Source of the DNA: Takakia lepidozioides | Lineage: Eukaryota; Plantae; Bryophyta | Direction of reading: 5' to 3' | Length of the DNA: 12,272 nt | Assembly (NCBI GenBank): GCA_030704615.1 | Contig: JAKLZA010000199.1 | Location: forward strand, 1 to 12,272 | In this document: positions 1 through 12,272 of the stretch, piece after piece | Numbering within the stretch: the stretch's first letter is position 1 | Layout: each line of letters opens with the position of its first letter | Program-made: the position numbers and the translations under genes | The notes under the pieces: generated by a model | The model's input: the letters and a program-made list of their open reading frames with translations, nothing else | Database searches by the model: none | What the model was told of the DNA's origin: nothing

Positions 1-1365
1 CCTCACTCTCATTCTAGACAAACATAAAGGATTTGTTTGAAACAGCTGAAGGAAAGCTTGCAGGGCACAGAGCATGAAGGTATGGTTGGCACAGAATGCA
101 ATGGGTAAGTGCTTGTAAGCTTGTGGGGCTTGCAAGTATCGATTTAGAGAAAATGTACTCTCCATTCGTCTGTCCTTGTGCCACTGCGTAAGTAGTAAGG
201 CGAGCGTGTAGTCTGTTATTTCCGCCATAGCTTCAAAGCTATAGCTTTGATTGTCTCCCCTGTCGAGACGCCCGTTACTCGGAACTACGCCGACTCTTTT
301 GCTCATAATTTTTTTAAATTCTTGATCTTGCTTCTTGGAAAATACCCTCTGCAGGAAATTCTGGCTCATGATTGGCTGTTGGCTCTGTGATTGGTTTTGT
401 AATTTAATTCTCTTCTGTGGATTTTTCCCCCAGGACTGTTTACTAGGATAGCACATGTGACAAGGATTTCGCTTTTGGGTACTTGTAAAGGGTTCCGTTA
501 CCCTTTCCATGTATGCATTAATGGGCCCACAATAAATTTCGGTTAACGTGCCGGGTAGGTACTTTGACGGCCAATTTTGTCTTCCTTCTTGATGACACCC
601 GTTCTTGCAATTCATGTCCGGCTGTGTGTCTCGCCCTGGCGTCCACGTGTCCATTTCTAAACCTGCCTCCGTCCACTTTTCCGCCGGCCACTCTCCGGAT
701 GTTAACCCACGTCCACATGTCACTGATCCTATGGACTGTGTAAACCCGGTGGGCTGTGTTGAGCTGTGATAGGCTGTGTGGCACTGTGATGGGTTGTGAT
801 AGGTTGTGCAACGCTGTGATGGGCTGTGATAGGCTGTGTCACGCTGTGATGGGCTGTGATAGGTATGCGAACACCTGTAGTTCCCGCCCTGGTCATATAT
901 GCTCGGCTTAGCGACAAGTGCTCCATACTCCGTTGATATCACTGGCGCAGCCCGTGACTGCTTTTGCGTTTCAACATGCAAATCGTGCTGCAATGGTTTG
1001 TCATAGATACCACTGTACCCCTTTAACTTATTGGCATTGACTCTTCCCAGCATCTCTTTGTTAATGGTTTGTAACATGGCTGTGTTGTTATCATACATCT
1101 TTTGTATGACATAAGGTCCCTTCCATGGTGATTTAAGCTTAGAAGCTTTAATCTTCCCTTTCTTCTGCAACCAGAGAACCAAATCTCCCGTCTTAAAAGT
1201 CTTTAATTTGCCTTCATCAAACTGTTCCTTCATCTTCATCTGAATTCTGGTCATGTTATCAGCTGCATCATCATGTACTTCTTCCACAAGGTATAATTCA
1301 TGTTTCCTGACCTTAATTGAATCTTCCAATTCCATTCTCTTTCCCCATTCTGTTCTCATGGTAGG
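1..1365 (-). CDS. Uninterrupted continuation of the pol frame: integrase C-terminus plus an unknown extension of over 330 aa running off the window
   Basis: I read all 455 codons in this frame from 1365 to 1 and found no stop. It is probably absent from the ORF track because no stop lies inside the window. Confidence 0.75.
751..863. repeat. Tandem repeat, 10-bp unit (nGGCTGTGAT-like), about 11 copies, arranged as a 30-bp higher-order unit
   Basis: gggctgtgtt gagctgtgat aggctgtgtg gcactgtgat gggttgtgat aggttgtgca acgctgtgat gggctgtgat aggctgtgtc acgctgtgat gggctgtgat agg. Confidence 0.95.
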
Positions 1366-2150
1366 TCACAAGAATTCCACTGGAAGTAAAGCTTCCATAC
1401 CATAAACTAATTGGAATGGTGTATACTTAGTGGTGACTTTATATGAAGTCCTGTATGACCACAAAGCTGTCAGCAGCTTTGTATCCCAATCCGTTCTGTT
1501 TGCATTGACTATCTTAGCCAAGATAGTACATAGTATTTTGTTGGTAGCCTCTGCCTGCCCATTACCCTGTGGGTAATACGTTGTACTTTTTCTATGCACA
1601 ATCATGAACTCTTTAGTCAATAGTTCAATGGTCTCATTAATGAAGTGACTTCCCTGGTCACTGATAAATTCCAAGGGACAGCCAAATCGGGTAAGTATGT
1701 TCTCATACAGGAACCTTGTTGTGGACTTGGCTGTGTTGTCCCTCAGAGCTTTAGCTTCCACCTACTTCGTAGTATAATCAGTGGCCGTAATTATATACTT
1801 GTTCTGTGTATTCTTGGCCGGTAGGTTAATTGGTCCAACAAAGTCTAGTCCCCATTTCTGAAATGGTTCAGTAGGCATCATAGGATGCAAAGCCATCTTC
1901 CTAGATCTCTGCAAAGGTCCTAGCCTCTGACATTCATCACAACTCTGACAATACTTGTGTACATCTTTGAACAAAGTAGGCCACCAGTAACCTGCAAGTA
2001 GTATCTTCCTACTGGTAGTCTCTTCTCCAAAATGACCTCCAGCCACTCCTTTATGAACTTCCTCCAAAACTTTATTTACTTCATGGTGGTACAAGCATCG
2101 TTTAAGTACTCCATCAGGTCCTAGCTTATACATTCTGCCCCCTATCATAG
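1015..2150 (-). pseudogene. Integrase (HHCC zinc finger, DDE core, GPY/F motif) with two premature stops
   Basis: HKGVAGGHFG...WWPTL...CQSCDECQ zinc finger; catalytic WGLDFVGP / ISDQGSHF / GQAEATNK. Reading through the TGA at 1366 gives FKTGDLVL...KLKSPWKGPYVI (1111-1125)...VNANKLKGY. Confidence 0.95.
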
Positions 2151-2289
2151 TATAAGGTAAAGCCTTGATAGCGATTCTCTTCCTCTGCTCCTTACCATAA
2201 CTAGGTGGGCACTGACCATGACTAAGGTACTATCTGATTGGCCACTGCCAATCTAACCATTCATCTGCACTTCCTTGCACCTCCATTGC

Positions 2290-2787
2290 AAATAAACTCG
2301 CATCAGGTAATTGGTCGTCTACTCCTGTGGCGGGCTCTCCTGTTGTTAGGCGTGACAAATGATCTGCCACAAGATGCAAACGGCCAGGCTTGTAAACAAC
2401 TTCGAACTCAAACTCGTGCAAGATTATTAACCACCTTGCTATCCTTCCACTTATCAAAGGTTTGTTCACCAGATATATCAGAGCCTGGTGATCCACATAA
2501 AACATAAACTTTCTTCCCAATAGGTAATGCCTGAATTTCTTGACTACATAAATCATTGCCAGTGTTTCTCTTTTAGTTGTGCTATAGTTCCTTTCAGCAC
2601 TGTTCATCAACCTGCTAGCATAGTACACCGGTGAATCTATATTTTTTGTAACATTTTGGGCTAACACCGCTCCCAACGCTTCTCCTGAGGCATCACAATG
2701 AACATGAAATACTACATGCCAGTGAGGGTTAATCAGCACGGGTGTAGTTGTTACTGACAATGTAAGTTCCTCAAAAGCTGTTGACAT
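2290..2787 (-). pseudogene. Ty3/Gypsy RNase H domain
   Basis: Motifs FHVHCDASGEALGAVLAQ, YYASRLMNSAERNYSTT, KKFRHYLLG, VDHQAL, RIARW, YKPG and VADHLSR in ORF 2230..2787. Confidence 0.95.
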
Positions 2788-2984
2788 TCAGCTGTCGTTG
2801 CAAACACTGCATCTTTCTTCAGAAGCTTGCTCAATGGTGCTGCTATCTGTGCATACCTTTTGACAAATCTACTGTAATAATTGGTTTGTCCAAGGAATCT
2901 CCTTAGACTCTTAACATTTACTGGTGGTGGAGAGGCTTTAATGGCCTCTGTCTTCCTGGGATCCACAAGTAGTCCCCTCTTACA
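2788..2984 (-). pseudogene. Reverse transcriptase C-terminal (thumb/connection) fragment
   Basis: Reads CKRGLLVDPRKTEAIKASPPPVNVKSLRRFLGQTNYYSRFVKRYAQIAAPLSKLLKKD, the typical Gypsy segment downstream of YxDD. Similarity stops abruptly at about 2985. Confidence 0.92.
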
Positions 2985-3149
2985 GCAAAGATTCCCCAGA
3001 GTGCAGCTCCAGTTGGGGATGCTCCAGCTGCTCAGCCCCTACTGCCACCAGCAGAAATGTCTCCGGAGGAATTCCAAAGTGCAGCGGATACAATGTTGGA
3101 GGAGACACACAGTAGCATTGGTAGAGTTCTGGGTAGTAGGGTATTCCAG

Positions 3150-3587
3150 CGGACTCTTCGAATCCCACTCTGTCGCATGGTCTCCCTTCCCATCGTCAGG
3201 CAGGCACTCCCCGGAGATGTGGATAAGCTCAAGTTCGCATTTCGAGAAGGGTACCGTCTAGGTTCGCCAGCCTTCTACGTTTCCCTTGAGAATGAGGACG
3301 GCGAATCTCGTGGACCCACTGCGGATGAATTGTCAACATGGGATACCCACTGGCACACTCGCAACGACAAATTTGAGGCAACGCTGAAGGGTGATCCAGA
3401 CTTCGGCCATATGTCGGGTAAAATGTTCTTTGTGTGGGACGGGAATCACCGACTTCTTGCCTGGTGGAGTACATCAAGCAGAACCATGCCAAGCACATTG
3501 GCTGGCATTACATGGTGGAGTGTGTCATCCTCAGGTGAAGGCGGCAGACTCCTCCCTGCTCAAGAATGCCATGGCGGACCTCAACTC
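3150..3587 (+). other. ParB/Sulfiredoxin-like nucleotide-binding domain (exon 1)
   Basis: IPLCRMVSLPIVRQALPGDVDKLKFAFREGY...PAFYV...MFFVWDGNHRLLAW. This has the ParB-N pattern: strand, conserved R, helix, G, P-hydrophobic strand, then DGxHR (3438-3452) and a helix. Confidence 0.7.
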
Positions 3588-3619
3588 GTAAGATACTCAT
3601 ACCCTCCCAAGCACGTTCG

Positions 3620-3637
3620 AAATGCGGTGCCGCATTT
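3620..3637. repeat. Palindrome copy 1 (intron 1)
   Basis: AAATGCGG-TG-CCGCATTT. Confidence 0.95.
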
Positions 3638-4827
3638 TGGTTTCCAATCTGTTTTGTTTCCATGCTTCCGTGGACTGAACTGGAGAGTGTGCCTTGCAGG
3701 GTCACTGAAAATGCGTACGTGCATACCCACATGGCACATATGCTGTACAGGGTGAGGAAAACTGGTCTCACTGATCCGCACATGTTTGCGGAAATGCTGG
3801 AGCCCGAGCTCATTCAGAAAGCCGTGGCAAAAACTGACCGGACATGGTATCGTCTCACTATGGATGGAATGGTGAAGGTGATATACAAAGTAAGTCGTCC
3901 TCCCATTTCCCTCTGCTCATCCTTCCCCAATTTTCAGTAATCTTTCCACATGAGTCGAATGTAACACTTCTGCATGTTTTTGTTGGCAGTCAAACATCAA
4001 GCTGGATTTGGCCCATGCCAAACGCTTCTTCATGGAAAGTGAGGGGCAGGTCAAAACGTTGCAGTCATTGACTGAGCACTTGAAGGAAGCCGGGGTCAAG
4101 TCCAGAACAAAATACAAGTCAAAGCTTGTGAAGCTGGTGGCCATTGCAGATCCGGCACTTGGAAAGGACTTCATCCCCGAGATTGCAAAACACTATTCTC
4201 GGGCCATGCAGCCGACCATGCAGTTGGAGAAACTGCATCACCTCTCAACGGCATGTGTTGAGACGAAAGAGAAGGTGAGGTTTCAATGCACTGAAGTTCC
4301 TTCCTAGCAATAGCCACTCTTCTTCCTGCTCCTGACATTGGATCAGAAATGGCAGACACGGCGGCTGTCGATCTGGAATGCATCGGAGAGTATAAGGACA
4401 ATGTGGTCTTTTCCACTCGAAGTTTCCGACCTTGTAGTGGATGTGTGGCTCAACCGCATGACTTGGAGGTTCCAGGTAATTCAAGGTACTTCCCCAGATT
4501 TGCTTTTCTGAAATGAATTCCCTGAACTGCTACGTGACAATGCATGTGGGAATCGCAGGTAATGACGAATGCGAAGGAGCAAGTCGTAATGCATACAAAT
4601 TCGTTTGGCTTGTACGTCAAATGGGATGGAACACAGACATTGGAAGACTACGTGACACGTTTCAGATGTGCGTACAAGGACACCTCTTCGCCAGGGAGCT
4701 GCAGACAGCAAGAAGGAGCATGGAGTTTACACATCAGGAGGGAGCGGGAAAAGCTGCAATGCGAATTGTTTACAGGTGAAGCCCAGCTGTCATTGTATGC
4801 AAAGCCTGGTTATGAGGTTTATCTGGG

Positions 4828-4844
4828 AAATGCGGCACCGCATT
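4828..4844. repeat. Palindrome copy 2 (intron 5)
   Basis: AAATGCGG-CA-CCGCATT. Confidence 0.95.
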
Positions 4845-5749
4845 CGCATTTTATGTTTTCGGTTGCACTCTGCGAGTACGTTGGTCTCAACTTTTGCTCA
4901 CGCATGCTGACTGCCCTGCAGGTATATGAAATACGTGCTTCTTCAGACAGGGGCCCTGGCTCAAGAGCCCCCGTTCTTTATGGCTTGGACCGTGGCGGGC
5001 TCAAGCTGTGTCTACACACCCGAGATGCAGAAACAATGGCATGTCGCGCATCTCGTTGGATGCCCATGGTACCTGGACCTGTCTGGCGGAATTGTTACGA
5101 GTCTAAGAAAGATCTGCACACGAAAGCAGAAGAGAGAAGAAAGGAAAGACGTGTCCCTGCTCGGCCAGAGTCGGCAAAGGAAGCTGCTTCTCTGGAACAA
5201 TCCAGAAAGGCAGCTGAGATGGCACAGAAGACTGTGGATGCAGCTGTGCAGGCTCAACAAAAGGGTCGAAGAAGCGACTCGCCAGCAAGGAGCAGTTGTT
5301 GTGACACCCAAGAAAACAGCAGAAACAGATAGTGCAGGAAGAGGGTGAGGAAGAGGACTCCAATGGAGACTTTGCAACCAGCCCACCCCCCGAAACGCAG
5401 CCGAAATCCCTTGGTGCCCACCGTTGTCACGAGAGGGACGAGAACTGGCTCGGCAAAGAAGGCACTCTTCAATCCCCCGGGGGGCACCCTTTCGAGCCGG
5501 TGGAAATGAAGAGGCCGAAAGTGGATCCCAATACAGTAGTCCAGTGTGTAAATGAGAGTTTCTTGGCGGCTTTGGATGGACGGGCAGCCAAGTTGGCATA
5601 CATGAAGACCATGGAGGGTCTGAAGGGCAGAGCACTGAAAAAGGCGGCTGCCGAAGAGCCTTCCGACACCCCTGGGTTTCTGAAGATGGTCTCGTTCTTT
5701 GAGAGGGTGTGTGCAGACAAGGATTGTAGGAGGGGCGGAAATGCCACCG

Positions 5750-6580
5750 AGTGGTCTTGCGATATGATCATCTTGGATATTCCGGACGGAGAGCCTGTGG
5801 AAGGACTGCAAGCTTTGCCATCTTGGAACAGGTACTCCGAGGACTTTTGGAAGAAAGGATTCGGGCTCGCCCGCATGGTGTTGGACGACAGAGGCTGTGT
5901 GGTTGTCCTGGCGAGCAGAGGCAAAAACACGCAGACAGGAATTGCGAAGTGGACCCGCAAGAGCGCCGTCCCAATTCTGAAGAAGAAATGGACGTGCATC
6001 AACACATTGGGCCTTCGGTCGGAAGGGAAGAAGGTAATTACGACATTGGCACTCGTCCTTTCATTTTCTTAGGAGTTTTTAAATGCGGTGCCGCATTCGA
6101 TTTCTAATCGTTCCCCACTGTGTATGCAGACGAAGCAGTTCGATGCATACTACTTTGTGAAGGAGAACTCCACCTTTGCTTTCCGGAAGGAGGGATTGTT
6201 GGTTGACCCTGAATTGCGACCCCATCGATTACGACGTCCTGTTCAACAACGTTCCCACGGAACTTCTCCCTCATAGCCTCACTTCAATTGAACCCCTGCG
6301 GTATTCACGGACTCGGAGCCCTGTCTTCATTCAGACAATTATGGAGACATGCACTGACGTGGAGGGCACAGTGCTCGACTCATCTGTGGGACAGGTATGC
6401 AGAATCTTGTTGTATGTTGTTCTCCAAATTCTTGTTATGCTTTAATTCGCAACATCTGAAGGGCCATGTCATAATGTGTGGATGGCATTGTAACAGGTGC
6501 CTCAATGTGGGCTGGGCGGTTTTCCGACCGGCACCTCTTTGCCTACGAGGAGGACACATCCGTCTGGGGATCCCATCTGG
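5750..6580 (+). other. Beta-class amino-methyltransferase-like domain (N6_N4_Mtase-type), exons 6-8
   Basis: Motifs are in beta order: CDMIILDIPDG (cf. VDLIITDPPYG, motif IV, 5776-5787); FGLARMVLDDRGCVVV (cf. CYRVLKPDGSIYI); FDAYYFVK; and RSPVFIQTIMETCTDVEGTVLDSSVG[T]|GASMWAGRFSDRHLFAYEED (cf. KPVALLERLI..SSNPGDLVLDPFAGSGTT..AA...GRRFIGIELD, motifs X-I-II). Confidence 0.78.
6081..6097. repeat. Palindrome copy 3 (intron 6)
   Basis: AAATGCGG-TG-CCGCATT. Confidence 0.95.
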
Positions 6581-7399
6581 AAGGGCTGCAACGGAATGTG
6601 AAGGCTCCCATCGAAGCCAAAGACTCCTCGGATTCGTCGGAGTCGGAGGAAGAGACAGTGGACATTGATGCCGAGGAGAACCCGGAATACGAGTGAGTGC
6701 AAACATTGTAAGTTTGCAAAGCCTTCTGGGTGATTTTTTGTCAAATGCATTTCCGGACTGTGGTTCTCATTGGTCTCGTTGGTGATTGTTATGTGCAGGA
6801 TTCTAGGATCCGGGTCGAAACATGTAGGGCCTACACTTCTTGCCAGGAAGAATGTCCCGTTCTTTGCGAGGGGCGACTTCATGACGAGCCCGGTGAAGGA
6901 CTACTCCCTTCCTAGTTATGCAGCTAAACTCGCAAATACAGCGATTAGACGATGTGAGAATCCTAGTAAAGTAGAGCAGATTTTGGAGAGGGCTAGGGAG
7001 GACAGAAGGATAAGGAAAGAGTTGGCAACAGCTGAGACAAGTAGACGGGTGCGAAAGTTCATATGTGATTCAGCGGATGAGAGCGATGCAGACAGGGAGG
7101 ACGACGAGCCAACGGAGGTGAGATGGTCGGTTCCGCAAGGTGAAGATGGGATTTTCGAAAGCCTGGCCAACGAGCAGTCCGCTGGAGATGAGAAAGACAA
7201 TGACGGGGTGGAGGCGAGTAGGACAGTCAAGGATAGGACGACGATAGTGATGATTTCAAGATTAATAGAATTTTAATGAACTCTCTGTACATTTAAGTTC
7301 CTTCCAGAGTATATAAAGGAAATTCTCCCCGTCCTTCATGTCCCCTCTCCCATGTGCTTCTCACGACAACATCGTCCAAACCTGGTCCCTCCCAAAATC

Positions 7400-7694
7400 G
7401 GAAATGCGGCACCGCATTTCCAAACCGAGGCAAGAACAATTTTCCGTTTCATGGTTTGGACATTAGAAACTGTTCGGCGAACGGAAATGCGGTGCCGCAT
7501 TTCCGTTTTCGACACGACAGTTTTGCCGATTGCCAGCTCCTTCCATGGAGGTAAATGTAAATGCAGAGGTCAAACATGGAAATGCGGTGCCGCATTTACA
7601 TTTTGGAGATGGACATTTTTCCAACTGCAGACCCATCGACGGAAATGCGGCTCCCCATTTCATGATGCTAGACGGGAATGCGGCACCGCATTCC
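7400..7694. repeat. Cluster of five palindrome copies downstream of the ParB-MTase gene
   Basis: 7400-7421 GGAAATGCGG-CA-CCGCATTTCC; 7480-7507 AACGGAAATGCGG-TG-CCGCATTTCCGTT; 7580-7597 AAATGCGG-TG-CCGCATTT; 7642-7661 GAAATGCGG-CT-CCCCATTTC (degenerate); 7675-7694 GGAATGCGG-CA-CCGCATTCC. Confidence 0.95.
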
Positions 7695-7712
7695 ATTGTC
7701 CAATAAGAAATT

Positions 7713-8561
7713 TGTTAACCGCTGGTTTATGACTTAGACAAAACAGGCTATTAACACTACTGCCCATTTCCTAAGACATGCAACAGAGGTTGTCCGATGG
7801 TATGCTTTCAAAAACGATTACGAAGTAATCGTTTTAAGGATAGCTAAACCATGAACGTCGGATGAAGCCATATCCTTGCAGACTGCTTAATCCTATTGAT
7901 TAAGACCAATCTACAGTCTCTTAAGCATAAAAGATCTTAGTTGGAAGGACTGAAGCCTCTTGGTTCCTACAAGCAGATGGTAGTCAAGAGAAACAAGAAC
8001 TATTCTGAGATGATACACATTCTCACCATCTCACGTTCACTCTACACAGAGATACTTCGAATAGCATGGCTTTACTCCAGAGCTCGTCACATCATCACAG
8101 AAGTACACAAAATCACTCTGAGTCCCTCTAACTACACATTGATCACTGATACTCCTACTGCGCACCTTCTGAGTTGCGTGCAGTCTTTTTATACTATGCT
8201 CGAAAGAGCCGTTACAGCCTGCGGTCGTTAATGACTGTTTGCCTAACTGCCTACGCAACCTAAAAGGTTTGCTAAAAAGTGGCTCGTTGTAGTGGTCGTG
8301 AGCCATAGTGGTAAATGATCCACTACTCCCTCTATTGGTTAAAGCCGATGTTGTCGTGACCGTGTGATATTGTGGTTCACGGCTCACGGTTACTACACTA
8401 CCCCTTACTGCTCTCGTGGTAATGTACCCTTGCCCCGCCATTGGCTAAGTACCGCGTACTTAGCCGTGTCTGCCTGTGGCTCAGGTAGTGTACGTCCATC
8501 ACTACCCAGTATGTCCCGTTGCGACCCTCGTTGTCTGTCCCTCGTAGCATAGCCGTTATCA
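7713..8561 (-). repeat. 3' long terminal repeat (849 bp)
   Basis: On the minus strand it starts TGATAAC immediately after the PPT and ends GTTAACA, a 6/7 terminal inverted repeat. It contains a TATA box. The candidate 5-bp target site is AAATT (7708-7712). The partner LTR is not in the window. Confidence 0.8.
8186..8193 (-). promoter_or_regulatory. Putative LTR TATA box
   Basis: TATAAAAA on the minus strand, about 370 bp into the LTR and in the element's sense orientation. Confidence 0.5.
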
Positions 8562-8585
8562 TTTATCCCCCCCCCCCCCCTCTTT
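8562..8585 (-). promoter_or_regulatory. Polypurine tract (plus-strand primer)
   Basis: Minus strand reads AAAGA-G14-ATAAA, directly followed by the TG of the LTR. Confidence 0.85.
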
Positions 8586-8607
8586 GAAATGTGTCCGCAC
8601 AATTTCG

Positions 8608-11600
8608 TCAATTCATGTACTTGCTGTATCTCTTGGGGATGTAAGGTGGTGGCATGCCTGTCTGCGAGGTAGGAAGTGCATCCCAGGATTGTCGTGGTGG
8701 CAGCTTATTGTTCTTGTTATCGTCACTGTCTGGTTGTTCCTCTAGTTCGTGAGTAGGCCAGCTTTCTTCATCAGGGTGTTCTGCTATCCGTCCCCACGTA
8801 CCATATCAATTTTTGTTGGTCAAGATTTTGCGGTAGGTTTGCTGCTCCTCCTTGGTCCAGGGTATAATGTGTTTTGTTGCCTTGCTGCCCATTAACCAGT
8901 TAACAGCTTGGACCCCTGTTTCTCTGAAAGGGTGGTCTCTGTCCAATACCAATGGTGAAAAGTGGACCTTTGCCTGGCGCCATGCTTCAGCATAAAGTGG
9001 CCTAATATATATGCTGAAGTGATGTGTGACTCTCTCTGGTGGGTAAATTCCCAGTGAGTATCTTTTTCAATACTCTCATAGCGCTGCCAGCTTCCCCTCA
9101 TTGTCACGAACATGCGGTACAAGTAACTGCCAATATAAAAACTTGGGCATCCCATCACAATGGTTACTGCCGAGGTAGGATTAATCTTCAATTGCCCCAC
9201 TGCCCACATGTAAGCTACCAACTCCTTGTATTCCAGAGGAGCTTGGCGCCAAAATCCAATTCTCCCCTGACCATGTCTCTTCCTTAGCCAGTGGTCTCAT
9301 CCTATATCTCAGAGAATAAGAGTTTGATTGAGAAGATGCAATTGACCCAATGATTTGCAGGGAGTTAAGGTTTTGAAAACCTTCTCCAGTATTTATGGGA
9401 TTTGGTGGGGGCTGGTACTACCATCATTTTAAAGTATTCCTCTGAATACTTTAATCACTCCCCATCCTGCTTGCATGGCATGATTTGGAAATCATCCACT
9501 GCTACTGAAGTTGATGCTACAAGGACACGTGGTAGTGTTACAGGGTTTACCTCTTGAGTAGAGGCCTGCTGTGGCATGTACCAGTGTGTTGGTTTGGTGG
9601 TGGTTGTGTTGTGTGGTTGTTGTTTGTGTTGGTGTTGTGTTGTGATTGTATTGGTGTCTCTCGTTCGTGATCTTGCTCCTCTTGATCCTCTTTGTCCATG
9701 AGTTCATCTTGTTCTGGAATTGGTGGCAGGAAACTCCTCATGAATGTGTGTCACCAATTTCGTCAACTGGCAATTTATCTGCCTCACCTTGCCCTGTTGA
9801 GTTCTTAATTCCAATTCCCCCACCCACTCCCTTCATTCAACCAAGCTCTGGCTAAGGCTACGTCTGTTGCATCCAACCTGCGTGCAGTGTCAGCTTCTCC
9901 AGCTGCTGCTCTCCATTCTTGTTCATGCCAATGGCAATGTCTCTTTTCTGTGGTGGCGGTAAACAGCCTGCTCTCAGCATTCTCCCTTTGCTCAGCAGAT
10001 GCAGTGTGCTGTTGAGCCATTTGGTTCCATGATCTTGGCAGTCCTCAGCTGCCCCTTGAGTGTCTCCACCTGCTGCTTTAATGTTTGCACCTGCCTGGTG
10101 AGTGTTTCCACCTCTGTCTCTGTTTCCAAGATCTAGCTTGCTCTGCATCGAGGTCAGCTTGGACATGGCGTCTGTTTGTCTCTCTATCCTTCCCACTTTT
10201 GCTCCCACTCATCTCTGCGTTGTGCCAATGTGTTGTATTGGCGGAGTAAGGTCGAATTTTGATCTTCTATGCTGCAATTGTAACCTCATGGTTACATACT
10301 GTTCTTGTAGTGGCCAATTCCTCTGGTGCTTCTCTTTGATGTGGTCTAAGATCAGGTTCAGGTTTTACGGGCTGATGTAATCTTGGCCTGTCCATACAAA
10401 CTGTCAGTTGCCCCCAATGCTGTATTGCCTGCAGAATGACATTTGTGGTGTTCCTCCAACCCTGTTGGTCCATGCTCTTGTATCTAAAACTTGTTGTGCT
10501 AGTGTATTCCAAATTGGAATTTCTTCTTGCTACTGCTGATCGGTGCCTGTTTGTACTATCTGCGTTTGCTGACTGGTAGGGTGCTGTTGCACCATCTGCT
10601 GTTGCTGCGCCACTATGTCTCCTCCTCTGATTGTGTGGCCTCTGTGCGGCTGCTTGCTGTGCTTCGGTTGTGCCATGGCTACTTTCCATGGGCGTTTTTT
10701 GCTTTGTTGGTGGTGTTTGTTCCCTCCTTCTGGCTGTTGATTCTCCCCTTCTCTCTGTACTGGGGAATTAGCCGTCGAGTTGATGATGTCCCTCTTGCTG
10801 CACTTGTGGTTGCTTCGTTGATCTCCGGGCTCTCTTTGCAAGTCCGCACTATTCTTCCTGACATGTTGCCGTCTCAATTCCTTCTTCCTCCCTTGTGTCT
10901 ACCCGTTGTATGATTCCCAACGTCGCTGCTTCGGCCGTTAGGTGTACAGTTTGTCGAATCATCTGGAGTTAACAAGGGAGTCGCCATGTAACTAAAGTCG
11001 TTTCCTTCTTTTTTTTTTTAACTGGTCAGTTCTTGAGTTAACTTCTTCAATAAGAAGCTTGCCCAATTCACGATTTGCCAATTGAAAGCAAATCAACACT
11101 TGGTCGATTAGCTCTTGGTACAGTAGCTATGGTTTTGCCTGAGGCAAAGCAGCAATGTGCTAAGTACTGGGGCTATCTTCCTGAAGCATGGTTTTGCTAT
11201 GGCGCATGTGTAGCCTTGATCTGCTTGGTTGAGATTCTCAAACAAATCTGCAAGTACAAAACCTTGGAGGTTTTCCGGGTGCGGTGGTACGTCCAAACTG
11301 GGAAGGTGAAAATACTTCCGCCAAGTACCTCTCTGTCAGCAGGTGTGCGTGTCGTGGACATTGTGCTCCGAGTGCTGGTGTTGTAATTCTCCAAGAACTC
11401 CCGCATAGCTCGTTGTGCTTCAGGTTCAGTCCAGCGTGGTGATGAAGTATCGCAGGCCAAGACTGTCCAAACATCTCTTGTGTCTTTGTGTCCTGCTCAA
11501 TCTTCCGCAATGTTGGGCTGATTTTGAAATTGACTGCGCATAATAGAACTTGGGTGCCTTCCGCTTGTGCCTTCCATTTCTCTTAGTCTCGCGGTGTGCT
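8608..11600 (-). pseudogene. Degenerate accessory ORF(s) of the retrotransposon 3' region: plant-transposon-protein-like N-terminal domain, low-complexity/coiled-coil middle, unknown C-terminal domain
   Basis: Stitched across frameshifts it reads LDSLGLRYFITT / RWTEPEAQRAMREFLENYNTSTRST / HLLTERYLAEVF / GFVLADLFENLNQADQGYTC...IAPVLSTLLLC / IVNWASFLLKKLTQEL / TPLLT. This resembles the 'REFY.N...INWA...P.LT' pattern of Athila-type extra ORFs. Q/E/K-rich helical segments lie at 9850-10900 and a globular segment at 8770-9400. The last stop is TGA at 8608-8610. The start coordinate is approximate. Confidence 0.6.
9585..9655. repeat. GT/TTG-rich low-complexity tract
   Basis: gtgtgttggtttggtggtggttgtgttgtgtggttgttgtttgtgttggtgttgtgttgtg; encodes a Q/H/N/T-rich linker on the minus strand. 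Confidence 0.8.
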
Positions 11601-12272
11601 GTAAGGAATTGGAGCAATCTGTATCACAAGAAGTATGAAGCACACTGGAAGTTGTGTATACAACAATCCAGTTTCGGAAGAGAAGGTGAGGAGTTTGCTC
11701 CTGGGTTTAAGTAGGGATTCCTCTCTGTAGGTTTCTCCTCTAACTTCTCTCGAGGTTCTCGTGGAGGGATATCTGTCCTGCTGTTTGCCTAGGTTTAACG
11801 TGTGTTAGCTTTAATTGTTGGGCCCAGGCTTACCAAGAAGCATTAGCCTCAGGTAAGGTTTTGAGAAAACTTCATACCTTTGTGCTTGTTTTCTTCCGTT
11901 GGTTTGTGTTCTTCGTGATTTGTTTGTTTAAAACCGATGGTCATGTGATGGTCCAGTTTCGGTCAGTTTATGTTCATCCTCTGAGCTTGTTATCCACTTT
12001 GGTATGTGGTCCGTTTAGAGGGGCGGCATTGGAGCAGTACTTGCAGCTTGGTTTAATGGCTTGCCCTATCGCCGCAGTTTTTTGGGCAACCGTGGATTGC
12101 GCCGTCGTTCCGCCTCTGTGTTATGATCGAAGGGTAGTGGTGTATGATTACCACTGTCGGTGGTGATCTGGAGCGTACATCTCGGAATTTAACACAAGCA
12201 GTGACTCGTTGCCGTTTCGTATTCGTCACTGTTCTGTAGGGCATCTGTGCTGGCCACGGTCTCACCATATGT

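Follow-up and report, generated by a model that had tools for sequence, protein, structure and literature searches.

The stretch of DNA analysed here, a contig of 12,272 nucleotides from the bryophyte Takakia lepidozioides (assembly GCA_030704615.1, contig JAKLZA010000199.1, positions 1 to 12,272 of the forward strand; hereafter the window), contains a decayed gene for a ParB-like protein and, in the introns and the 3' flank of that gene, eight copies of a short palindrome. The locus raises the question of whether a mobile element can encode a protein that recognises sites amassed in the element's own DNA. Comparison with relatives in other land plants suggests that this gene is the accessory gene of a family of Mutator-like DNA transposons of land plants, in a copy that is truncated at the 5' end and frameshifted, and we lean towards the view that the accessory protein of the element itself is what recognises the palindromes, which we call dyads; this binding is a prediction from sequence.

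Distribution of the dyads in the window and among its relatives

A pattern scan of the whole window for AATGCGGNNCCGCATT, in which up to two mismatches were allowed, returned exactly eight matches, the number of AATGCGG-NN-CCGCATT copies that the original prediction had listed, where 0.01 would be expected by chance. The dyads start at positions 3621, 4829, 6082, 7403, 7486, 7581, 7644 (with one mismatch) and 7677, and none of 200 shuffled sequences, in which the dinucleotide composition was preserved, reached eight copies. With three mismatches on the 14-nt core, only two more matches were obtained (3711 and 5947), which is chance level, as 3.3 were expected. The consensus of the window copies is AATGCGG-YR-CCGCATT, and the spacer dinucleotide is either TG or CA, meaning that the same slightly asymmetric dyad is present in both orientations. 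The arms reach 11-12 bp in the 3' copies, as in the copy at 7486. Copies 1 and 4 had been said to share their upstream flank, and indeed CCCTCCCAA is found 9-10 nt 5' of the dyads at 3621 and 7403.

Three of the copies lie, as predicted, in introns of the three-frame gene model: copy 1 (AATGCGG-TG-CCGCATT, 3621..3636), an exact match, in intron 1 (3588-3699), copy 2 (spacer CA, 4829..4844) in intron 5 (4776-4921), and copy 3 (spacer TG, 6082..6097) in intron 6 (6034-6128). The other five (7403, 7486, 7581, the degenerate 7644, and 7677) form a 3' array (7385..7700) and stand 129-418 bp past the stop at 7274. No dyads were found by pattern scan in the exons of the gene model, in the Ty3/gypsy pol fragment to its left or in the right flank. 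The claim that the dyads are confined to introns and the 3' flank is therefore true of the window, but it does not hold as a rule: complete relatives also have dyad arrays 5' of the gene and at the element's far end, and a copy inside the coding sequence. The window has no 5' array because the gene copy is truncated on its 5' side, at about position 3000, and its 3' array is the counterpart of the 3' subterminal arrays of complete Riccia elements. At the DNA level, no similarity was found between the window and any of the relative loci examined. An exact scan of metagenome contigs for the extended window dyad gave no clusters, only 36 scattered single-site matches, four of which were counted on both strands and most of which are on long, likely prokaryotic contigs. 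The collection thus does not include the organism of the window, and the result does not bear on that organism's own genome.

In nine of the ten lineages examined, a short palindrome of the lineage's own is clustered around the accessory gene; several of the relative loci are contigs with gene calls at the level of open reading frames (ORFs), and in L006 and L047 the intragenic dyads could be assigned to introns only approximately. Locus L006 carries 17 copies of (AA)TGGTCGG-GT-CCGACCA(TT), some within the gene and others in its 5' flank; L002 carries 35 copies of TGTCGG-AT-CCGACA within a 329-bp satellite, of which 27 units stand upstream of the gene and eight inside it; and L007 and L008 have CGTTCKG-YR-CCGAACG in four copies, three upstream and one intronic. 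In Riccia, subfamily A has two dyads: CCAGCGG-N3-CCGCTGG, which has opposite orientations in the two subterminal regions, and CCGGCGA-N3-TCGCCGG, which lies between the accessory gene and a divergent partner gene. The subfamily B dyad, CCGGCGGA-S-TCCGCCGG, occupies the same positions and has intragenic copies as well, and more than 30 copies of the subfamily C dyad, AAGCTAGCG-N5-CGCTAGCTT, are distributed over the two ends of the element, the intergenic region and an intron of the partner gene. In the case of Adiantum, a palindrome of about 36 bp is present in 6-8 copies between the two genes. The matrix of counts, motif by locus, is block-diagonal. Co-localisation and co-variation of the motif with the gene, which the original prediction had singled out for checking, are thus both seen among the family loci, the dyads being gene-linked and lineage-specific. 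Members of the window clade have a common CGG-N2-CCG core and differ in the outer bases, and within an element the arms are the same from copy to copy in sequence, not merely in their pairing.

One intronic dyad keeps its position between lineages. Intron 5 of the window gene is homologous to an intron of L007 (the exon that follows begins with YMKYVL in the window and with YWKHVL in L007), and each of the two introns carries the dyad of its own lineage, with differing arms. In Riccia, one dyad lies inside the coding linker between the two domains of the accessory protein (L001 12454, L048 12375, L049 12367), where it encodes G-[GV]-[PV]-R-R, and this dyad differs between subfamilies A and B in step with their non-coding dyads.

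Two simpler descriptions of the dyads were considered and rejected. Firstly, a strict rule by which they occur in non-coding DNA only fails, because in subfamilies A and B alike the coding linker contains one dyad. Secondly, chance and independent miniature inverted-repeat transposable elements do not account for them, because the dyads have no shared long flanks, are element-restricted in every locus and differ between the Riccia subfamilies, a comparison that covers about 140 kb of Riccia DNA.

Some repeats at the relative loci deserve mention in their own right. The L002 satellite (1155-10000 and 12191-16440) has more than 35 units and gives the impression of a dyad array on its way to becoming a satellite. 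At the Riccia locus L004, 15-bp direct repeats (CTGATGACGTG-like) form blocks at 13492-13560 and 17087-17200, 3.6 kb apart and downstream of the gene. The dyad centre GGA(C/G)TCC of L047-L049 and L001 (Riccia A and B) contains GANTC, and the centre of the L002 dyad contains GATC. CcrM, whose structure best matches the methylase-like domain described below, recognises GANTC; this may be coincidence.

The accessory protein and the transposon that carries it

Three-frame translation of the window gives a gene of nine exons on the plus strand (3057..7276; exons 3057-3587, 3700-3889, 3990-4274, 4347-4475, 4559-4775, 4922-6033, 6129-6396, 6496-6693 and 6799-7276), separated by introns of 69-146 nt with canonical GT..AG borders. 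This gene is a decayed, 5'-truncated and frameshifted copy, in which the frame is broken near 3467, 3535, 5343 and 6205 and does not match at the acceptor of intron 5. With the piece from the first exon as query, a full HMMER search detected 375 relatives of the N-terminal domain, most of which are exon-sized ORFs on eukaryotic contigs, and which include annotated proteins of Riccia sorocarpa and Adiantum nelumboides. The Riccia protein P0163 (1207 aa) matches the window in tblastn at 3153-3476, in the N-terminal domain (35% identity), and at 5686-6024, in the C-terminal domain (26% identity, E 6e-10), which indicates that the two-domain architecture is conserved. An intact accessory protein would have about 1100-1250 aa and would combine an N-terminal domain of the ParB/sulfiredoxin (Srx) fold, of the nucleoside triphosphate (NTP)-binding type, with a C-terminal domain of the beta-class DNA-methylase fold. 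None of the ten exon pieces of the window gene matched a Pfam family, and neither domain matched a PDB sequence in phmmer and profile searches. A word-based search for homologues of the 231-aa methylase-like piece also returned none, probably owing to its length filter. The ratio of nonsynonymous to synonymous substitution rates (dN/dS) between two Riccia copies is 0.27 over 526 codons, showing that the accessory protein has been under purifying selection.

The N-terminal domain (3153..3587, plus strand; IPLCR...WDGNHRL...AMxDxN) was delimited by means of homologues, an alignment, an AlphaFold2 (AF2) model and Foldseek. Its consensus in the family alignment is IPLCRL...FYVS...WD..W...FE...VWDGNHRL.AW...AMH..N, in which G-N-H-R is at least 90% conserved. 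The AF2 model has a mean predicted local distance difference test (pLDDT) score of 85, and its top matches in PDB are almost all proteins of the ParB/Srx fold: Noc, sulfiredoxin, PadC, KorB, ParB, SerK and SbnI. The motif of the domain, located at 3438-3452 (plus strand), is DGNHR, not the GERRxRA box of ParB. TIGR03187 matches two of 55 family members (best E 0.001) and Pfam DndB three of the 55 (best E 0.057), all below the curated cut-offs. Judging from the modelled fold, the domain belongs to the ParB/Srx superfamily without being a canonical ParB, and the faint matches would place it closest to the DGQHR/DndB branch. The original prediction had spoken of a ParB/palindrome system; the fold bears this out, but canonical ParB it is not, as only faint DGQHR/DndB-type matches and no ParB family were found.

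The N-terminal half of the C-terminal domain was mapped to 5686..6033 (plus strand) by tblastn, alignments and Foldseek. A model of the C-terminal domain (mean pLDDT 74) retrieves CcrM at 9e-12, followed by M1.HpyAVI, M.MboIIA, M.BceJIV, M.RsrI, the rotifer N4CMT and M.PvuII, and in the alignments motif IV precedes motif I, which is the beta-class N6A/N4C order. The catalytic (D/N/S)PP(Y/F/W) is replaced by D[LMIV]Px in all lineages aligned: at the motif IV position, the window (5776-5787, plus strand) has DIPD and not DPPY, Riccia has DLPT, DMPT, DLPS or DMPS, Adiantum has DVPF, L006 has DLPD and L008 has DMPE. Retained are a GxGA[ST] motif I-like segment and the acidic residue that follows it; in the window, this putative S-adenosylmethionine-binding segment, recognised in the alignments (6365..6555, plus strand), is split by intron 7 into exon parts 6365-6394 and 6496-6555. 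Pfam PF01555 scores 23.7-26.2 bits on the Riccia homologues, against a cut-off of 26.7 and over the motif I region only; one Riccia paralogue has a precomputed PF01555 match, and the window pieces have none. The methyltransferase-like module that had been predicted is thus present as a fold, but its catalytic tetrapeptide is intact in no lineage. The C-terminal domain is methylase-like and probably not a canonical methyltransferase, and the degeneration of the tetrapeptide in all lineages makes marking by methylation doubtful.

That the gene is part of a mobile element, as originally proposed, is supported by its Riccia relatives, which lie in transposons with terminal inverted repeats and target-site duplications. 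In Riccia, the accessory gene stands head to head with the multi-copy partner gene (27 Riccia paralogues), and the same divergent arrangement is found in Adiantum and in a distant Riccia subfamily. The partner protein has cysteine/histidine clusters and D..D..E-like motifs which, read by eye, are Mutator-like; Pfam detected no transposase family in 19 homologues of this protein, only a faint ZSWIM1-3 RNaseH-like match (E 0.18). Three independent Riccia insertions have the same terminal inverted repeat and exact target-site duplications of 9-10 bp (CCTTGATCCG in L049, GAAGAAATG in L048 and GTGAAATTTA in L001), a signature of the Mutator superfamily. We use Mutator-like for elements with terminal inverted repeats and a target-site duplication of 9-11 bp, both of which are found in the relatives, the window copy being truncated. 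The Riccia elements have lengths of 9.7-14.9 kb. Among them, L048 (6577-16251) is a non-autonomous deletion derivative of a subfamily B element, with intact terminal repeats and a 9-bp target duplication; it has lost the partner gene and keeps an intact accessory gene and the dyad arrays. No partner protein was detected by tblastn/tblastx in the window, L002, L006 or L007, and within the window clade (L006, L007, L002) there is no transposase-like gene in the 4-10 kb upstream, with the dyads still present. The terminal repeat of about 60 bp has no dyads and carries another repeated motif, ACATATCAGC; it is common to Riccia subfamilies A and B, though their dyads differ, and the Riccia dyads begin about 270-440 bp inside the element ends.

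Other terminal structures were seen as well. At L050, an inverted repeat of 1.19 kb (3230-4418 and 14175-15308; 89% identity) carries subfamily C dyads and is far longer than the terminal repeat similarity of about 60 bp in subfamilies A and B. At L006, a 269-bp direct repeat (3282-3550 and 14648-14915; 91% identity), with its copies 11.4 kb apart, brackets the accessory gene and the arrays, and it may mark tandem element copies or another terminal structure in the window clade.

The window is plant-like; it is not human, nor is it a virus or a gene of a pathogen. As to the surroundings of the gene in the window, the original prediction had placed retrotransposons on both sides. The left one is supported by Ty3/gypsy pol domains, but the right one could not be confirmed. 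In the right flank (7700-12272), Pfam recognised no ORFs; many degenerate minus-strand ORFs and a 15-nt poly-C tract (about 8567-8582) are found there. The Ty3/gypsy pol fragment (900-3000, minus strand) comprises the C-terminus of the reverse transcriptase (RT), RNase H and the zinc finger and core of the integrase, with internal breaks, and has no gag, protease or RT N-terminus. It abuts the accessory gene at about 3000, which explains why the upstream region of the gene is missing, and, as it is partial itself, two truncated elements adjoin here and the locus is not a simple insertion. Just past the 3' end of the gypsy pol, at 753-874, there are at least eight tandem 10-bp units (GCTGTGATRGG-like), possibly part of a long terminal repeat or of internal non-coding DNA.

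Candidate readers of the dyads

As to which protein binds the dyads, and what the binding does, we infer an answer that is, in our judgement, somewhat probable. Each lineage would keep many copies of its own short GC-rich palindrome in the subterminal regions, the intergenic region and the introns of its element, and a dimer of the accessory protein would recognise these dyads and so act on its own element only. The binding would probably let the element regulate itself or shield it from silencing by the host, along the lines of VANC, TnpA or a multi-operator repressor such as KorB; enzymatic methylation seems, from the sequence of the C-terminal domain, a less likely outcome.

Several observations weigh against the accessory protein as the reader. 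Firstly, the fold matches of the N-terminal domain are weak (best E 5e-3, template modelling scores 0.3-0.5), and in Pfam searches with the window piece and 55 family members the domain matched no family. Secondly, canonical ParB reads parS by a helix-turn-helix domain and not by its N-terminal domain, and no helix-turn-helix or other DNA-reading domain was detected in the accessory protein by Pfam or in the AF2 model, where the region after the N-terminal domain consists of helices modelled at pLDDT 50-79. Thirdly, Riccia L004 has no clear dyad, only its 15-bp direct repeats. Fourthly, co-variation between lineages is expected of any transposon cis element. Finally, the partner protein, whose cysteine/histidine clusters are zinc-finger-like, could bind the dyads, and Mutator transposases can regulate their own copies sequence-specifically, that of AtMu1 being reported to activate its cognate copies (2026 preprint, bioRxiv 10.64898/2026.08.24.746577).

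These last points lead to the strongest alternative, which we consider rather unlikely: the transposase of the element, i.e. the divergent Mutator-like partner, would bind the dyads as sites of subterminal transpososome assembly and/or as regulatory sites, and the accessory protein would not be the reader. Consistent with this, the accessory gene always stands head to head with the multi-copy transposase-like gene in Riccia and Adiantum, dyad arrays are found in both subterminal regions, in opposite orientation, as well as between the two genes, and the L050 dyads lie within inverted terminal segments of 1.2 kb. On the other hand, five features of the dyads favour the accessory protein. The dyads lie outside the terminal repeat of about 60 bp, which has its own motif (ACATATCAGC), conserved across subfamilies with differing dyads. 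They run through introns, the intergenic region and one exon, far from the ends and not only at them. The transposase-less derivative L048 keeps both the accessory gene and the arrays. In the window clade, dyads are present with no detectable partner gene within 4-10 kb. Lastly, the arm sequence is identical among the copies of an element, as expected for recognition by a protein. It should also be noted that the identity of the partner as a transposase comes from motifs read by eye, and that Pfam gives it none.

A second alternative, which we regard as very unlikely, is that a host factor or the host methylation machinery reads the dyads, which would then serve as targets of silencing or as CpG-rich elements with promoter, enhancer or boundary function. 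CGG/CCG is present in all dyads and provides CG and CHG methylation sites, and arrays are found in the 5' intergenic regions, where promoters are expected. However, a host reader would be expected to have one motif per host, whereas the Riccia genome has three to four, each limited to the loci of its own subfamily. Least probable of all, in our opinion, is that the dyads work as structures, either RNA hairpins of the pre-mRNA or 3' UTR (processing signals or small-RNA precursors) or DNA cruciforms, or are reader-less by-products of tandem repeats or satellites: the palindromes do fold as RNA (-9 to -20 kcal/mol), the arrays are tandem and the L002 dyad sits in a 329-bp satellite of more than 35 units, but compensatory variation would be predicted where the arms are in fact sequence-identical within a lineage, the RNA-folding z-scores of the intronic copies are modest (-1.6 to -1.7), dyads stand on both sides of divergent genes, two lineages have dyads with different arms at one and the same place in an intron, as selection for a sequence that is recognised would produce, and RNA hairpins leave the subfamily-specific motifs within one genome unexplained.

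Returning to recognition by the accessory protein, one may ask how such a protein would work. A more specific proposal, which we put forward tentatively and think rather improbable as it stands, is that of an NTP-switched ParB/Srx-fold protein with a dead methylase, whose dimer would load on the element-specific dyads and then spread along the element or bridge it. The idea that the protein loads at parS-like sites and spreads as a cytidine triphosphate-dependent clamp, with which the original prediction started, stays an analogy. If the proposal is true, clamp-like loading would be the eukaryotic counterpart of the bacterial ParB/KorB-site systems. Each subfamily would then have a private self-recognition code, shielding it from silencing or assembling its ends, with rapid co-evolution of protein and dyad within one genome.

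Known systems and what the land-plant case adds

Proteins of this kind have been described in algae. The giant Sola1 element Sola1-1_Ec32 of Ectocarpus, reported in 2025, encodes an accessory protein with ParB-like and DNA-methylase domains opposite the transposase, and for such proteins the authors of that study proposed a role in binding the transposon that encodes them and altering its epigenetic state; green- and red-algal cases are cited in the same work (PMC12477816; for the green-algal ones, Iyer et al. 2011). Like the family described here, the algal class has a single protein of about 1100 aa in which a ParB-like N-terminal domain is joined to an N4C/N6A-type methylase and which is encoded on the strand opposite to the transposase. 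The two differ in that the algal element is a Sola1 and ours are Mutator-like, with target duplications of 9-10 bp, and in that the hosts are algae in one case and land plants in the other. Furthermore, in the land-plant family the catalytic DPPY is degenerate, and cognate dyads and their co-variation are documented; it is by architecture alone that we liken the two. In the red alga Bostrychia moritziana, the Plavaka protein PAG3 combines a ParB-like domain with a 2-oxoglutarate (2OG)-oxygenase, tandem inverted-repeat arrays lie beside its gene, and self-binding has been suggested (bioRxiv 10.1101/2025.02.11.637652). PAG3 resembles the protein described here as a transposon accessory protein with a ParB-like N-terminal domain and inverted-repeat arrays adjoining the gene. 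Unlike it, PAG3 carries the 2OG-oxygenase, the methylase being on the separate PAG2 (with SET), and its hosts are Plavaka/CACTA, Zisupton or Fanzor elements.

Judged by analogy, the closest functionally demonstrated systems would be VANC and TnpA. The VANC proteins of Arabidopsis VANDAL elements have been demonstrated to counter silencing, with loss of DNA methylation (PMC5735166, PMC10398659). The original prediction drew this parallel, and it fits: VANC too is an accessory protein of a Mutator-like element, and its short motifs, which vary from one related element to another, have built up in tandem in non-coding regions, also inside the element. VANC differs in having neither a ParB nor a methylase fold, in that its motifs are not dyads, and in that its function is demonstrated, the present family being known from sequence alone. 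TnpA of En/Spm is a non-catalytic protein that binds a 12-bp motif, of which the subterminal regions at either end hold direct and inverted copies, and that regulates the promoter and its methylation state. It shares with our proposal an element-encoded, non-catalytic protein and a short repeated subterminal motif, but it is derived from a transposase, belongs to the CACTA superfamily and has no ParB or methylase fold.

Bacterial systems provide the likeness in domains. ParB-parS, KorB-OB and Noc-NBS all have an N-terminal domain of the ParB/Srx fold and many short palindromes on the replicon that encodes them, and fusions of the ParB fold with an N6_N4-methylase, the same two-domain combination as here, are common in prophages (PMC12704722). 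The land-plant family is set apart from the bacterial ParB systems by DGNHR (DGQHR/DndB-like) in place of GERRxRA, and by an intron-bearing eukaryotic gene in a transposon. A helix-turn-helix, a dimerisation domain, a ParA partner and CTP motifs are so far seen in the bacterial systems only.

The idea of self-binding by such an accessory protein has therefore already been proposed for algal transposons, and the present case is a land-plant, Mutator-borne one. New here are the comparative evidence that links dyads and elements, the degenerate methylase motif and the conserved position of an intronic site. A class so far only predicted in algae is thereby extended to land plants, both bryophytes and ferns, in which Mutator-like elements appear to have recruited a two-domain protein of bacterial or phage type. 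Co-variation, intron position and retention in a transposase-less derivative would together be the first comparative evidence for dyads as functional partners of the element. To our knowledge, there are very few systems, chiefly VANC and TnpA, in which the molecular details of transposon self-recognition and escape from silencing are understood. With a dyad of its own for each subfamily, several of them within one genome, the family would offer a natural specificity series for the study of sequence-specific self-recognition, and its accessory proteins may be a source of programmable DNA-targeting modules for plants.

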